Shown here: positions 240 to 60,530 of the stretch, in pieces
How the letters are laid out: each line of letters begins with the position of its first letter
Position numbering within the stretch: position 1 is the first letter of the stretch
Assembly: GCA_951406725.2 (NCBI GenBank)
Contig: OX597838.1
Span: 29,078,001 to 29,142,000 of the forward strand
From: Octopus vulgaris
Lineage: Eukaryota
Direction of reading: 5' to 3'
Length of the DNA stretch: 64,000 nt
Program-made: the position numbers and the translations under genes
The notes under the pieces: generated by a model
What the model was told of the DNA's origin: nothing
Databases searched by the model: none
Seen by the model: the letters and a program-made list of their open reading frames with translations, nothing else

Positions 240-430
240 TGACCGCGTGTGTACCGTTGGCGATTTTTTCCTCCTCTGTCTTCCCTTCTCTGGATCTTTC
301 CTTCTCCTATGTTTCTGTCGAAAAGCTCCGCTCGAAACGTTAAACCCTCCTTCTTTCCTTCCTTCCTGAGCGTCCAATAATACTATATTTGTTCCACGTC
401 CTCGCGTTGTTGTGTTTTTTTGTGATTTCA
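240..430 (+). mobile_element. Penelope-like terminal repeat remnant
   Basis: Contains hammerhead-like motif 311-345; bracketed by (TA)n tracts. Confidence 0.5.
311..345 (+). ncRNA. Minimal type I hammerhead ribozyme candidate (variant core CUGUCGA)
   Basis: gttt CTGTCGA a aagc-tcc-gctc GAAA CGT T aaac: stem I gttt/aaac, stem II (1 mismatch), ACGU palindrome. Confidence 0.5.
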
Positions 431-568
431 TGTTTGGATTAATATATATATATATATATATATATATATATATATATATATATATATATATATATATATA
501 TATATATAGTAAGTAAATACATATATTCGCTACAGGTGTACACTACATGTATATATGTATATATATAT

Positions 569-872
569 ATCACCGTGACCGACCAGGTTATCATATGCTG
601 CTACACATCGCTGGTCACAATGCGTTTCGTATTGTTTTAGCCTTCAAACGACGCCACCCCGCTGGCTAAGCGAGCAGGCCAACAGAGAAAAGAGTGAGAG
701 AAAGTTGTGGCGAAAGAGTACAGCAGGGATCGCCACTACCCACTGCCGGAGCCTCGTAGAGCTTTAGGTGTTTTCGTTCAATAAACACTCACAAAGCCCC
801 GACTGGAAATCGAAACTGCGATCCTACGACCGCGAGTCCACTGCCCTAACCACTGGGCCATTGCGCCTTCAA
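569..872 (-). mobile_element. SINE-B, tail type a
   Basis: tRNA-like head gaaggcgcaatggcccagtggttagggcag...ttcgatttcc; body shared with 24034-24365; distinct 3' tail. Confidence 0.85.
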
Positions 873-1027
873 CATATATGTATATATGTGTGTGTGTGTG
901 TGTGTGTGTGTGTGTGTGTGTGTGTGTTTATTCCATCACACCGCTTCATGGTCGTTGTTGGCGTGTTCACGTTCCCGTAACTTAGCGATTCAGCAAATCG
1001 ACCGCCCCCCACCCCCCCAAAAAAACA

Positions 1028-1174
1028 AACTTATTTCTACAGCTGAGTGAACTGGAGCAACGTGAAGTAAAGTATCTTGCTCAAGAACACAACTCACAGC
1101 CCGGTCCGGGAATCAAACTCGCTACCTCCTGATTCTGAGCCCGGCGCTCTAACCACTGAGCCATGCGCCTCCAC
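1028..1174 (-). mobile_element. SINE-D 5' part (tRNA head + cttgagcaagacact domain)
   Basis: Matches full copy at 56253-56580. Confidence 0.8.
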
Positions 1175-1179
1175 AAGTT

Positions 1180-1430
1180 CGCTTTAAATCTTGGTATACA
1201 AAATTTTTTCCTTTGATAGTTTCAGCTTTGCCCTGTGCATAACTCACACTCCAATCTTTCCAGTTCAAATCAAGAACAAAATCGTACGACTTCATACTGC
1301 ATACGTTTGTTACTACATCGTATATATCATCGTATATTTCTATTCTAATGCTCTTTTCCGCCATTACACAAACTGACTAGAAGTGGTTCTCTATAGCATT
1401 GTTTTCGAAATCACCTTTAAATACTTCCAT
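1180..1430 (-). pseudogene. Possible LINE (CR1/L2-like) AP-endonuclease remnant
   Basis: Minus-strand peptides CYREP and SYDFVLDLNWKDWSVS resemble the YRxP and GDFNxPxINW motifs; very degenerate. Confidence 0.3.
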
Positions 1431-1724
1431 TTTGTCTTGTAGGTTTTTATCCATTCATGTCTTGACTGCTTTATTCATTTCTTTGTATCGTTCCGCTTTG
1501 ATAATATCGATGATGGACCGTTCAACGTATTTTCTTCTATCTTTTCTTCTTCCTTTTCAAACTCTCCTCTCTCAGTTTTGATGTTGGGTTGACCTGTTAC
1601 TTACTTCTCGGTTTCTAAGATGGCGGCTTCTTTTGTTGATTTCTTTGTTGTTTATTTGAAAAGACGTATACACGGGGTTGTTGTCGTCTGTTTCAGTCTG
1701 CTGCAGAGGTGCACAAGTGCCTCA

Positions 1725-56580: not shown

Positions 56581-57118
56581 CATTGTAGAATTATAAGCTA
56601 TTTATTACACCTCATTTGGATATTTACCACTTCTGAGGTTCCGCTCGCTATGAAACATACGTCACCCGGATCTTTCCTATTCCATTCTGTAACTCTTGTA
56701 TTCTTATTTGTACACCCGGCAACTCTGGCTCAATTCCCGGTGACGCGTTAAGTCCTTGAGCAAGACACTTTATTTCACGTTGCCTGTCGTATGTATATAT
56801 ATATATATATGTGTGTGTGTGTGAGTCTGTCTGTGCTTGCCCCCGCACCAGCGCTTGACATCCCCATAACTCAGCGAGTCGGCAAAAGACATCGACAGAA
56901 TAAGTACTAGGCTTGAAAAATCTTATCTGCCCCTCCCCCGCCCAGGGTTATACAGACCCGGATGATAACTACTGCTATAGATAGAAAAAAAACGTAGGGA
57001 GGTGACGAGCAAGATGTAAGAATGAAGAATGAGAAGAGGAGATAAATATACAGTGAAAGAGATGGAGGTTAGACGTACATTAAGATGGCTTCAATGAAAG
57101 GGTAGATATATATATATA

Positions 57119-57502
57119 CTAGCAGTATCGCCCGGCGTTGTTCGGGTTTGTAAGGGAAATAACTATATAAGTATTTTTAGAGATGTAAAGTATAATAGCC
57201 AACTCAATATGGCTAACCACAAAGGAGGGGTGTTACTGTAGCTTTTTACGTTCTGAGATTTAATAATAAATTATTAGAGAGTTACTTCCCTTATATATGC
57301 CAAAAATGGGAAAAATTTATGGTAATTTTTTTTTTAATCGTTGACTCATCGTAGACGCGCGCTAATACCCAGAAGGGCTCGATATGAATCACGACTATAA
57401 GATACCCGGTTTTGGTTAAACTGCACCGCAAAATGTGGGAGTAGTTAGGAATCTAAATCGTAGGAGACAGACAGCACACAACCTCTCTTTTATATATAAA
57501 GA
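57119..57502 (-). mobile_element. Non-autonomous Helitron, family 1
   Basis: Same termini as 32016-32519. Confidence 0.8.
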
Positions 57503-58099
57503 TATATACTCGCGTAAGTTAAGCAAAGCATTTCTCTCAAACTTCTATTAAACCCACGTCCATGATACATTTGGGATGTTTCTATATTAAAGACTTTTCA
57601 TATTTCACTGTATTGAGTGAAAATGGATTCTTTGAAGCTTTCATAGAATTATGGATTTCGGAATGCTATGGTAAAGAACTAATAAACATGCATGAAAAAC
57701 GACATCAGAATGGAACGCAGTCGTGTCTTTAATAAATATTTGTAAGCAAAGTGCTTCCGATTGATATACACGCACGTGTGTGTGTGTGTGTGTGTGTGTG
57801 TGTGTGCGTGTGTATTCCTTTATTCTTCTACTTGTTCTTGTCATTTGATTGCGGTCATGCTGGAGCACCGCCTTGAATGGATTTAGTCGAACGAATCGAA
57901 CTGAAGACTTATTTTTCAAGCCTAGTATGAAGCCTAAGTATGAATCTAGCGATGTCTTTTGCCGACTCGCTGAGTTATGGGGATGTAAACACACGAACAC
58001 CGGTTGTGAAGTAGCGACGGGAGATAAGCACACACACACACATACACACAAATATATATTTATATATGTATATATATATATATATATATATATATATAT

Positions 58100-58336
58100 A
58101 TACCGGAGTAAACACATAAATGTGAAACAAGGTGGAAAAAAGAGTACTCAAATACCAGTGGTAGAGTAATATGCTTTATTTAAAACAGCAGGAAATTCAA
58201 CAAAACCTGTTACTCTGAGTTTCCCGTTGCCGTTCATCGGACAGTTTTTCCTAGCAAAATCTGTCCGATGAACGGCAACGAGAAACTCAGAGTAACAGGT
58301 TTTGTTGAATTTTCTGCTGCTTTGAATAAAGTATAT
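58100..58336. mobile_element. Penelope-like fold-back remnant, 76-bp arms 58169-58244 / 58261-58336
   Basis: Inverted arms with about 5 mismatches and a 16-nt spacer. Confidence 0.75.
58261..58298 (+). ncRNA. Type I hammerhead candidate (variant core CCGAUGA); mirror copy on minus strand 58207-58244
   Basis: ctgt CCGATGA a cg-gcaa-cg a GAAA ctc-a-gagt A acag. Confidence 0.55.
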
Positions 58337-58639
58337 ATATATACGACGGGCTTCTTTCAGTTTTCGCCTGTCAAATCCAGGCACAAGGCTTTGGTCATCC
58401 TGAGGTTATAGTAGAAGACACTTGCTCAAGGTGCCACACAGTGGGACTGAACCCGGAACCATGTAGTTGCGAAGTAAGCTTATCACACAGCCACTCCTGA
58501 GCCTATCTACCTACCTACCTTCCTACCTACCTACCTACCTACCTACTATCTATCTATCTATCTATCTATCTATCTATCTATCTATCTATCTATCTATCTA
58601 TCTATCTATCTATCTATATGTCTGTCTGTCTTTTTTTAA

Positions 58640-58878
58640 ACACACCAACATCGGTTGTCAAACGATGGTGGGGGAGGGGACAAACACAGACGCACAAACA
58701 TATACATATACCAACGAACGGCTTCTTGCAGTTTCCGTCTATCAAATCCACTCACAAGGCTTTGGTCGGGTCGAGGCTATAGTAGAAAACACTTGCCCAA
58801 GGTGCCACGCAGTGGGACTGAACCCCGGAACCACATGGTTCGTAAGCAATCTACTTACCACACAGTCATGCCTGCGTC
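58640..58878 (-). mobile_element. SINE-A 5' two-thirds
   Basis: Homology to other copies. Confidence 0.85.
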
Positions 58879-60379
58879 TCTGAAAATTTTTTGACAAATG
58901 TTACAGTTATATAACTTCGACACCGTGACTTCATTTGGAAACTGTAAATTACCAAGCTTATTTGATCGAAAGAATATATACCAAAAAGGAGACCTTTTTT
59001 CTTTTCTTTTTGTTTTTTATTTTTTGATATTTTGGCTCCAAATTTACGATGTATCGGTTTTGTTTGCAATATATCTCGTGTTTTTCGTTATCATTAGTTA
59101 CAGAAATGTATATAAACGCGTCCATTTTGCTTCGCTTTGTTTTTTTCGCTTCTTCGAAAATCTTCCGCTTTCAAGCCTGTTAATGAAGGGAATAAACATG
59201 TTCGCGCGTGCGTGCGTGCGTGCGTGCGTGCATATGTGCGTGTGTGTATGTGTGCGTGTGTGTATGTGTGTTTGTACGTGTGCATATGTAAATCTATTTA
59301 TGTATGCATGAGCATATGTACATGCACACATAACCACAGGCACAAGCTCACACGCACATACAAACACACACACACACATACACCACACTACACCACCCCA
59401 CACACATTCGCATACATATAATGTATGTATATGTAACATATGTATCCATGTATGTGTATATATATATATATATATATATATATATATACATCGACACACG
59501 CACAAATATGCGTACATACATTCATACATACGTAACACGCGCATAAATGCATATACACACATGCAAATATATGTATATGTATGTTTCTCTCCTGTTTCGG
59601 CTCTGTGTATTTATAGATATATATATGTAGTTTAAATATATATACACGCACGAACACATGCACACATATATATCTATATATATATTATATATATATATAT
59701 ATACACACACACACACAAACACATATATATATACATACATACACACACACACACACATATATATATGTATGTATGTATGTATGTATGTATGTATGTATGT
59801 ATGTATGTATGTATGTATGTATGTATGTATGTGTACATGTTTGTGTGCGTGTATGTCCGTGCGAATATGTGAATATATTAATGTATGCGTATATATATAT
59901 ATATATATATATATATATATATATATATATATATATATATATATATATATACATATATGATATAAGTACATGTGTGTATGTGTGCGTGTGTGTGTGTGTG
60001 TGTAAATGTACCTTAATCTTCCAGAAACATAATTGCGTTTGTGATAATAACAAAAAATATATTTGTATTTTATGTTAGCGTGTTCGGAGTGATTGATTTT
60101 ACATTTCATTACGTTTCCATTATCCATCCATACATACATACATGTGTGTGAGTGTGCTTCTGTGTGTGTGTGTGTGTGTGTGTGTGTGTGTGTGTGTGTG
60201 TGTGTGTGTGTGTGTGTGTGTGTGTGTGTGTGTGTGTAAAACCAGTGACTGCAGAGTATTCAAGTGGTAAATAAGCAATGAAGCGTGAAAAGTATTTGTT
60301 TCGATCAAGTAGAGTGGAAGAATATTTATTGAAATCTAAAATTAAGTAAATCGCAACTGGTTTCGCGTTCCCGCTTCAT

Positions 60380-60530
60380 CGGGCGGCCCTATTCTCTGTT
60401 CCTTTCTGTCGAGGAGCGTAGGCTCGAAACGTAAAGGATTTTCTCACTTCCTGAGCCTTAAACTAATACATCTGTTTGTTGTTTACGCACCCGTCTTCTT
60501 CTTTTGTTTTTTCTTTTGTAAATTCTCACT
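60380..60530 (+). mobile_element. Penelope-like terminal remnant
   Basis: Hammerhead motif plus downstream ctaatacatctgtttg, related to 50800-50870 (reverse); followed by (TA)n. Confidence 0.5.
60401..60437 (+). ncRNA. Minimal type I hammerhead candidate (variant core CUGUCGA)
   Basis: ccttt CTGTCGA g gagc-gtag-gctc GAAA CGT A aagg. Confidence 0.55.

Follow-up and report, generated by a model that had tools for sequence, protein, structure and literature searches.

Candidate hammerhead motifs on five families of short, probably Penelope-derived repeats in a 64-kb stretch of the Octopus vulgaris genome

Six hammerhead-type motifs in the window

The DNA considered here, called the window below, is a stretch of 64,000 nucleotides of the Octopus vulgaris genome (assembly GCA_951406725.2, contig OX597838.1; G000:C25:29078001-29142000 in our labelling). 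The genome searched amounts to 2.8 Gb in 227 contigs. The window is AT-rich and rich in (TA)n microsatellites. Six sites, numbered 1 to 6 (311, 4611, 6620, 14148, 58261 and 60401, respectively), carry motifs resembling the minimal type I hammerhead ribozymes found in Penelope-like elements (PLEs). A sequence-only reading of the window had described helix I followed by a core like CUGANGA, then helix II, GAAA, helix III, UH and the complement of helix I, and this order was recovered at all six positions. It is likely that the six sites are hammerhead motifs, or decayed descendants of such motifs, borne by five families of short PLE 3′ fragments or non-autonomous PLE derivatives. They can be parsed as follows.

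311-345, plus strand: site 1, mutated copy of a minimal hammerhead-type motif with core CUGUCGA, palindromic ACGU and no loop 3. GUUU (311-314), CUGUCGA (315-321), A AAGC-UCC-GCU C, GAAA (334-337), CG, U340 U341, AAAC (342-345)
4611-4655, plus strand: site 2, PLE minimal hammerhead type with A9 changed to C, an unpaired G after position 9, helix II GUCAC/GUGAC and H17 = C. GGACCA (4611-4616), CUGAUGC (4617-4623), G, GUCAC-AGGAGU-GUGAC, GAAA (4641-4644), GAAC, U4649 C4650, UGGCC
6620-6681, plus strand: site 3, hammerhead in which the core is canonical (CUGAUGA...GAAA), helix III is palindromic (ACGAUCGU) and H17 = A6678. CAC (6620-6622), CUGAUGA (6623-6629), AUGAC...GCCAU, GAAA (6667-6670), C-GAUC-G, U6677 A6678, GUG
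14148-14200, plus strand: site 4, complete type I hammerhead with a 7-bp helix I, a canonical core and predicted cleavage after A14193. GAGCUUC (14148-14154), CUGAAGA (14155-14161), U-UUC-UCUU-GAA-U, GAAA (14174-14177), CAG-UUCUAGUC-CUG, U14192 A14193, GAAGCUC (14194-14200)
58260-58299, plus strand: site 5, hammerhead-like order with core CCGAUGA (U4 to C) and a 2-bp helix II. UCUGU (58260-58264), CCGAUGA (58265-58271), A-CG-GCAA-CG-A, GAAA, C-UCAGA-G, U58293 A58294, ACAGG
60401-60437, plus strand: site 6, minimal hammerhead-type motif with a clade-level U6, an unpaired G, helix II GAGC/GCUC, palindromic ACGU and H17 = A. CCUUU (60401-60405), CUGUCGA (60406-60412), G, GAGC-GUAG-GCUC, GAAA, CG, U60432 A60433, AAGG

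Three helices can be drawn around the core at every site, and all six parses contain the A15.1-U16.1 pair, a non-G H17 (U, C, A, A, A and A for sites 1 to 6 in order) and a directly following helix I. The invariant core C3 U4 G5 A6 N7 G8 A9 ... G12 A13 A14 is present at 6620 and 14148; it is broken by U6 at 311 and 60401, by C9 at 4611 and by C4 at 58261. With these substitutions at invariant positions, the copies at 311, 4611, 58261 and 60401 are predicted to be inactive. At 6620-6681, the core is canonical and helix II is damaged, two of its nucleotides (TG) being missing with respect to the family consensus. The stretch 14148-14200 is predicted to be the only undamaged canonical copy of the window, and in a read-through transcript it would be buried in a hairpin of -103 kcal/mol. 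The six motifs had been thought to be mutually dissimilar. This does not hold for 311 and 60401, whose units align along their whole length as members of one superfamily, so that five families are represented and not six.

A hammerhead descriptor was run on the window and on dinucleotide shuffles. With the strict core, three matches were obtained (6623, 14155 and the mirror copy 14100-14138 on the minus strand) against 0.04 expected from the shuffles. At the tightest setting 14155 was the sole match in the window and none occurred in 25 shuffles. A descriptor whose helix III region is limited to 10 nt or less misses site 4, which is found by the version with an extended helix III. When one core mismatch is allowed, the window gives 20 matches against 9.8 ± 3.5 in shuffles; the other four sites appear at this level, and site 5 is matched by the loosest setting only. 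Sites 1, 2, 5 and 6 taken alone are thus near chance level, and their reality rests on family-level evidence.

Family-level evidence

Genome-wide counts given below are exact pattern matches, controls are reversed patterns, and L-numbered loci are stretches sampled elsewhere in the same genome. The consensus sequences of families 1, 2 (A9 subfamily), 3 and 4 pass the strict descriptor. At family level, canonical-core relatives exist for 311/60401 and for 4611; none was found for 58261 in the sampled sequence. In the patterns of families 3, 4 and 1/6, several bases occur at N7 and loops 2 and 3 are variable; the stems and the core are kept.

For the superfamily of sites 1 and 6, the canonical core pattern CTGANGA-N-GAGC-N3-5-GCTC-GAAACGTH has 4,978 matches in the genome against 0 for the reversed pattern. 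Its dominant form, CUGACGA-A-GAGC-UCC-GCUC-GAAA-CG-U-U, combines an unpaired base after A9, a G10.1-C11.1 pair, the absence of loop 3, the palindrome ACGU and a 4-bp helix I. As far as can be judged from its sequence, this form is a textbook PLE minimal hammerhead by the definition of Cervera and de la Pena (2014, PMC4209133). Site 1 belongs to the same UCC-loop clade, whose majority sequence reads CTGACGA-A-GAGC-TCC-GCTC-GAAACGTT; the clade consensus is accepted by the strict descriptor. Site 1 departs from this clade by two point changes within the motif, A6 to U and G10.1 to A. For helix I, the UCC clade has GUUU/AAAU or GUUU/AAAC and the GUAG-loop clade has CUUU/AAAG, the pair 2.4-1.4 being G-C or G.U in the former and C-G in the latter.

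Site 6 represents the GUAG clade, and a U was observed at position 6 in all 29 close relatives of the 60401 copy. Ten independent instances in other sampled loci comprise one canonical copy of the UCC-clade type and nine GUAG-clade copies, all with U6 and with A, U, G or C at N7. Canonical GUAG-clade members account for 8 of 100 among the matches listed for the family 1/6 pattern. Judging from the nine instances in approximately 360 kb sampled, the GUAG clade appears to be the most abundant of all, with tens of thousands of copies. It keeps all core bases but A6, together with helix II and the ACGU palindrome, and N7 is free across its subfamilies. In the computed fold the 60401 motif is a rod-like hairpin, because U6 lets U4-G5-U6 pair with A15.1-C15.2-G16.2. 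In the classical mutagenesis of Ruffner, Stormo and Uhlenbeck, published in 1990, changes of A6 reportedly lower cleavage by orders of magnitude. It may be imagined, as a rather unlikely case, that U6 is selected, either within a non-canonical hammerhead that cleaves, perhaps with the help of a protein, or as a "ribozyme-off" lock in the rod-like hairpin that would favour retrotransposition.

The family 3 pattern CTGANGA-N20-50-CATGAAACGATCGTH has 1,455 matches in the genome against 0 for its reversed control. These matches fall into several subfamilies, with U, A or G at N7 and a helix I of 3 to 6 bp. Helix II is long and interrupted, and it varies yet remains paired (AUGACUGU/ACAGCCAU, AUGACUGC/GCAGGCAU, AUGUCU/AGACAU, AUGUC/GACAU). 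In 12 subfamily representatives the paired cells amount to 90.7%, and to no more than 56% after sliding of the partners, a comparison of sequences that would lend modest support to the pairing. For a dimer of the family consensus, the minimum free energy (MFE) structure is the double-hammerhead fold, in which ACGAUCGU forms a helix between the two molecules. In the window copy helix II is lost and this fold is not adopted.

Family 4 is very young, and at least 40 of its copies are 99-100% identical to the window copy. Its pattern has 4,430 genome matches against 9 for the control, with A or U at N7 and variable loops 2 and 3. Helix III of site 4 is made of CAG/CUG (3 bp) plus A15.1-U16.1. In the unit alone, the hammerhead fold lies within 1.2 kcal/mol of the MFE; with the inverted arm described below, the RNA forms the hairpin of -103 kcal/mol. 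It was also observed that "linear" family 4 hammerheads recur as outward-facing inverted pairs 1.7-9.7 kb apart, for instance on contig C1 at 2210388(-)/2212890(+), 16820498(-)/16823144(+) and 40220156(-)/40225787(+). Such pairs are far too frequent for chance at approximately 1 copy per 630 kb, and they may be inverted pseudo-long terminal repeats (pLTRs) around a larger element.

In family 2, the core CUGAUGC (C9) is that of the window copy and of a young subfamily. An older subfamily (L053, L059, L064, L067, L070 and L076; 88-93% identical) has CUGAUGA-G-GUCAC-AGGAGU-GUGAC-GAAA-GAAC-U-C-UGG, and this A9 version passes the strict descriptor. The 15.2-16.2 region of the family (AGAACU) is non-palindromic.

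Site 5 is the weakest candidate of the six. C4 is family-wide in family 5, and in the MFE structure of the site C3-C4-G5 is paired with CGG. A motif AATAAA-N-TTTACTC is found some tens of bases 3′ of the family 4 and family 5 motifs and of the Rfam-confirmed hammerheads L005, L009 and L010. The window contains only two occurrences, one following the family 4 motif and one following the family 5 motif, against 0.27 expected. Because this motif is common to family 5 and to Rfam-confirmed hammerheads, family 5 would be a diverged relative and not a chance look-alike. The motif could be a common polyadenylation signal or a module for initiation by the reverse transcriptase (RT). In the wider form AATAAA-N(3-8)-T(W)TTAC(H)C, it is seen in three families, at 14210-14227 (+), at 58164-58180 (-) and in L005, L009, L010, L022, L056 and L106. 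As a separate observation, L008 and L009 (G000:C9:40298314 and C24:7233783) are Rfam-scoring hammerheads of approximately 34 bits with C4 (CCGAAGA). This is the U4-to-C change of family 5, so that the variant recurs in separate families.

Comparison with Rfam

Rfam scans of the whole window, at gathering thresholds and at E≤10, gave no hammerhead match. Elsewhere in the genome, L001-L010 match Hammerhead_1 (RF00163) with up to 45.5 bits, and two of them used as controls, L002 and L010, score 35.6 and 33.7 bits. Since the genome has Rfam-visible hammerheads and the window sites score nothing, the window motifs represent another type of sequence. These RF00163 matches are from the same genome and also have a palindromic helix III (GAAAC-AUGU-GUC, GAAAC-GAUC-GUU); they differ from the window motifs by a GACCC/GGGUC helix II and by scores of 33-45 bits. 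The motifs of the present families lie below the reach of the Rfam hammerhead models, and a standard annotation would therefore report almost none of them. The sequence-only reading had expected an uncatalogued set of ribozymes. In the sense that no Rfam hammerhead model scores the sites this was borne out; the class itself had already been described (PMC4209133).

Strict-descriptor hammerheads were also noticed within 1.5 kb of Rfam hammerhead matches, in L001 (1070-1146, minus strand), L004 (2243-2293, plus strand) and L005 (1324-1372, minus strand), an example being CTGAGGA...GAAAC-GGCC-GTA with a palindromic loop. Such motifs are thus dense or clustered in the genome. In the window, a further hammerhead-like stretch with one core mismatch lies at 19672-19759 (+), CTGACGA ... 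GATCGAAACGTGTCC. Its 3′ half is like the Rfam-type PLE hammerheads of the genome (GAAAC-ACGU-GUC), and it is possibly a further decayed copy.

Insertion architecture and link to Penelope-like elements

The motifs are borne by the following units and arms.

236-442, plus strand: family 1 unit of the UCC-loop clade, with (TA)n on both sides and flanks matching the genome-wide clade TCTATGTTT...GTTAAACCCTCCT
4490-4775, plus strand: family 2 fold-back copy, made of an inverted 5′ arm (4516-4559) and a 5′-truncated 3′-terminal PLE part, with the arm partner at 4731-4774
6512-6590, minus strand: inverted partial family 3 copy, reverse complement of 6739-6817, with a head-to-head junction at 6590-6607
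6599-6897, plus strand: family 3 unit of approximately 300 bp, with a (TTA)/(TA)n tail to approximately 6945
14069-14144, minus strand: snap-back arm, inverted duplicate of the first 76 nt of family 4, with a mirror hammerhead at 14100-14138 (-)
14145-14288, plus strand: family 4 unit, with its 3′ end at (TA)n and AATAAATTATTTTTACTC at 14210-14227
58103-58252, minus strand: complete family 5 unit, with a motif at 58211-58240, AATAAAGCATATTACTC at 58164-58180 and its 3′ end at (TA)n
58253-58332, plus strand: inverted duplicate of approximately 80 nt from the 5′ part of family 5, containing site 5
60239-60391, minus strand: further unit, which carries a motif like that of family 5 (60355-60382), lies head-to-head with the family 6 copy and has its 3′ end at (GT)n
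60392-60531, plus strand: family 6 copy of the GUAG-loop clade, 5′-truncated, with its 3′ end at (TA)n

The units are 140-320 bp long, carry the hammerhead near their 5′ boundary in sense orientation and end at a (TA)n microsatellite. An inverted duplicate of the unit's own 5′ part often sits directly upstream, which gives rise to the "fold-back" arms. Four sites had been placed inside or between inverted arms, and the arms of 4611, 6620, 14148 and 58261 were indeed located (4516-4559/4731-4774, 6512-6590/6739-6817, 14069-14144/14149-14224 and 58155-58252/58253-58350). Head-to-head pairs and inverted arms of variable length are found in families 2, 3, 4 and 5, young family 3 copies often being complete head-to-head pairs. 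Family 4 copies are immediately preceded by an inverted repetition of their first 44-73 nt; as its length varies between copies, the arm would be a snap-back product and is not a fixed terminal repeat. In L056, a family 4 copy without arm, the element reaches approximately 160 nt further 5′, and "linear" family 2 copies without the left arm also exist. The 3′ ends of the units are constant and their 5′ ends are truncated. PLEs show 5′ truncation, inverted 5′ copies, a bias towards (TA)n and hammerheads near the 3′ end (PMC8557442); 5′ truncation, an inverted 5′ copy and microsatellite insertion are all present here. In families 3, 4 and 5, the 5′ ends and snap-back points of the units are found upstream of the motif at a distance of 0-25 nt from it, as though reverse transcription ended or turned back at the folded hammerhead.

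The motif at 60355-60382 (-) reads CGC, CCGAUGA, A, GCG-GGAA-CGC, GAAA, C-CA-G, U U, GCG, and has a better helix II than site 5 (GCG/CGC after an unpaired A). The unit that carries it (60239-60391, minus strand), together with the truncated family 6 copy, looks like a chimeric head-to-head junction of two families. Another abundant short repeat, richer in GC and resembling a short interspersed nuclear element, flanks several hammerhead units (60-170, plus strand; 58345-58480, minus strand; L022, 400-590).

The genome contains at least 5,955 GIY-YIG candidates, with many intact open reading frames (ORFs) of 781 aa that have RVT_1 plus GIY-YIG, and the 3′ ends of these 781-aa PLEs abut (TA)n. 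The closest public relatives of the PLE proteins are approximately 58% identical; they come mostly from mollusc-derived contigs, the named ones being from bivalve-symbiont assemblies. For family 2, a direct ORF link was obtained. In L068, L069 and L072, the unit follows a GIY-YIG ORF at a distance of approximately 450 nt, and an internal (TA)n is situated in the interval. This ORF matches a PLE endonuclease (tblastn, E=8e-9), and its Pfam GIY-YIG score (E=7e-4) is just under the cut-off. No ORF link was found in the sampled loci for families 1/6, 3, 4 and 5, so the check for adjacent PLE ORFs succeeded for family 2 only, and the PLE link of the other families rests on insertion architecture. 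When the six units were compared by blastn with 20 sampled PLE loci, the sole matches were family 6 in L114 and family 5 in L106, which are or look like separate insertions. Family 5 in L106 was rejected as a part of the PLE: it is a separate insertion into (TA)n beyond the PLE 3′ end. Given that these loci lack families 2, 3 and 4 as well as any strict hammerhead near the ORF end, the short units may be non-autonomous derivatives. As a side observation, the 3′ region of a 781-aa PLE in L097 (2590-3665; G000:C16:20836500-20840700) is 1.1 kb long, contains repeated blocks with GATGACGTC and ends at (TA)n; no strict hammerhead was found in this 1.1-kb region.

Proposed mechanism

Insertion of the units would occur by target-primed reverse transcription, with a PLE RT/GIY-YIG protein cutting AT-rich microsatellite DNA. 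The inverted arms would come from events at the template's 5′ end, either template switching or second-strand synthesis on a hairpin (snap-back). Transcripts of the canonical versions would adopt the type I hammerhead fold, and would work as dimers in families 1/6 and 3, via the palindromes ACGU and ACGAUCGU, and as a monomer with its own helix III in family 4. Cleavage is predicted 3′ of H17 and would probably be weak, perhaps helped by a protein. The palindromic stem III of the dimer type, which the sequence-only reading had named as frequent in PLEs, is seen in families 1/6 and in family 3, where the dimer MFE structure forms it; family 2 is non-palindromic and family 4 has its own helix III.

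Weighing of the alternatives

In one alternative, the sites would be chance look-alikes in AT-rich fold-back repeats, such as DNA transposons akin to miniature inverted-repeat transposable elements (MITEs) or hairpin satellites, with neither hammerhead ancestry nor a ribozyme. Four of the six sites need a core mismatch and the shuffles give about half of the 20 matches of the window; however, strict-core matches reach approximately 75 times expectation, and each family has thousands of canonical copies with reversed controls at zero or near zero. Sites 4 and 5 do lie in near-perfect palindromes that fold as long hairpins, and TA-targeting DNA transposons leave TA flanks too. Yet arms varying over 44-73 nt and "linear" copies without arm leave no fixed terminal inverted repeats, contrary to what a MITE or another fold-back transposon would have, and 3′ ends are constant where 5′ ends are truncated. 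The absence of support from any Rfam model for any site also fits this alternative; the concentration of variation at N7 and in the loops, and the GIY-YIG ORF upstream of family 2, do not. As a whole this explanation appears very improbable. For site 5 alone, a chance look-alike is possible.

It may also be envisaged that the motifs descend from hammerheads and no longer act as ribozymes, being kept as structured RNA (for RT binding, for priming or as a 5′-end hairpin) or simply through youth. The GUAG clade, the most abundant one, has U6 at clade level, keeps the other core bases with a variable N7 and folds as a rod-like hairpin, and invariant positions have also been lost in a young family 2 subfamily (C9) and in family 5 (C4). 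The identity of 96-100% among family 3 and 4 copies means that their conservation may reflect age alone. On the other hand, diverged subfamilies of families 1 and 3 retain the canonical core and vary freely at N7, as would be expected of a working hammerhead. That the 5′ ends of family 3, 4 and 5 units cluster upstream of the motif, at 0-25 nt from it, would suit a structural role; such an alternative function has no direct support here. According to the literature, the insertion of PLEs in vitro does not require hammerhead cleavage (PMC11167929), and there are proliferating PLE clades that lack canonical hammerheads (PMC8557442). On balance, this explanation is considered unlikely.

Several points weigh against the preferred reading of the sites as hammerheads, or decayed hammerheads, of PLE-derived units. 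Some concern the motifs. The Rfam hammerhead models give none of the six sites a score, even when 816 bases are scanned at E≤10, and the same holds for family 3 copies with an intact helix II and for a near-canonical family 1 copy in which H17 is mutated to G. Covariation in the 12 family 3 representatives amounts to one pair with a double change, and the core was fixed in the pattern by which this sample was drawn, as it was for the family 1/6 sequences that show the change of pair 2.4-1.4. The 10.1/11.1 pair of family 3 is A-U or U.U, and most of its subfamilies have a helix I of 3 bp; helix II of family 4 is made of three A/U-rich pairs (UUC/GAA) with U.U at 10.1/11.1. The G10.1-C11.1 pair that these two families lack is described as highly conserved in PLE minimal hammerheads, which themselves reportedly cleave poorly in vitro (PMC4209133). 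Other points concern the PLE link. The units start upstream of the hammerhead and not at the predicted cleavage site, so that the ribozyme does not define their ends. In the window, no Pfam RT or GIY-YIG domain was detected in the long ORFs and tblastn with four PLE proteins gave no match. Families 2, 3 and 4 were found by blastn in none of the 20 sampled PLE loci, and no strict hammerhead was found there within approximately 1.5 kb of the ORF end.

With these points taken into account, the sequence-only reading saw real things and named the right class, and the window copies are mostly damaged. Its claim of several PLE families, each with its own ribozyme variant, stands in that distinct families carry hammerhead-type motifs with canonical versions in thousands; it has to be reduced to five families, with two of the six window copies canonical and an ORF link for family 2 only. 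Likewise, the inverted 5′ copies of PLE type are matched by the 5′ truncation, the inverted 5′ copy and the (TA)n targets, and no RT/GIY-YIG remnant accompanies them in the window.

Relation to known systems

Minimal hammerheads are massively present in metazoan genomes and tied to PLEs (PMC4209133). As read from their sequences, the window motifs would be PLE minimal hammerheads and belong to this known class. They resemble its members in type I topology, in a short helix I and in a palindromic helix III (ACGU in families 1/6, ACGAUCGU in family 3), which implies dimeric action in these families. Families 1/6 and 2 also have the unpaired nucleotide between A9 and 10.1 and the G10.1-C11.1 pair. 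In contrast, family 3 is marked by a long interrupted helix II with A-U or U.U at 10.1/11.1, family 4 combines a true helix III of 3 bp with a very weak helix II (U.U at 10.1/11.1), and one dominant clade carries U6. Moreover, PLE minimal hammerheads sit in the pLTR of full-length PLEs, whereas ORF adjacency was observed here for family 2 only.

The Poseidon-type PLE of Anolis carolinensis (PAc) has an RT with a C-terminal GIY-YIG domain, as do the 781-aa RVT_1 plus GIY-YIG ORFs of the present genome. The protein cuts AT-rich targets; insertion in vitro does not depend on the hammerhead of the element, whose cleavage is assisted by protein (PMC11167929). Unlike the PAc hammerhead, which overlaps the start of the ORF, the motifs studied here are in short non-coding units, and the sampled 781-aa family is without a strict hammerhead in its 1.1-kb 3′ region. 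Metazoan non-LTR retrozymes are likewise non-coding and short (170-400 nt), each unit has a type I hammerhead, and PLE machinery presumably mobilises them (PMC7229834); retrozymes have been proposed as non-autonomous PLE derivatives (bioRxiv 10.64898/2026.07.22.740005). However, retrozymes are tandem arrays giving circular RNAs, whereas the present units occur singly and dispersed, and have (TA)n tails as well as inverted 5′ arms. Tandem arrays are absent from the window, each family occurring once or as an inverted pair, with no direct tandem copies.

Other features of the window

A single Rfam family exceeds its threshold in the window, with a 5S ribosomal RNA match of 50.1 bits at 19446-19564 (-). 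Several of its helix I pairs are non-standard, and it may represent a copy of the 5S gene, a pseudogene or a repeat derived from 5S. The long microsatellites found at many places, whether (TA)n, (TG)n or mixed (for instance 5137-6400, 51793-54879 and 59224-59909), attract hundreds of sub-threshold matches to microRNA models (mir-297, mir-3149 and others), which are artefacts of simple repeats.

Concluding remarks

The window itself is ordinary: it holds decayed repeat copies, with no sign of a host function. At the scale of the 2.8-Gb genome, three repeat superfamilies account for at least approximately 10,800 canonical hammerhead motifs, and there are probably many more core-variant copies. 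The families add new consensus sequences to the PLE minimal hammerheads, with a weak or mismatched 10.1-11.1 pair, a variant that would be capable of acting as a monomer and a clade-wide U6. Finally, these families go on amplifying after the loss of invariant core bases, which bears on the role, if any, that the hammerhead would have for PLEs.

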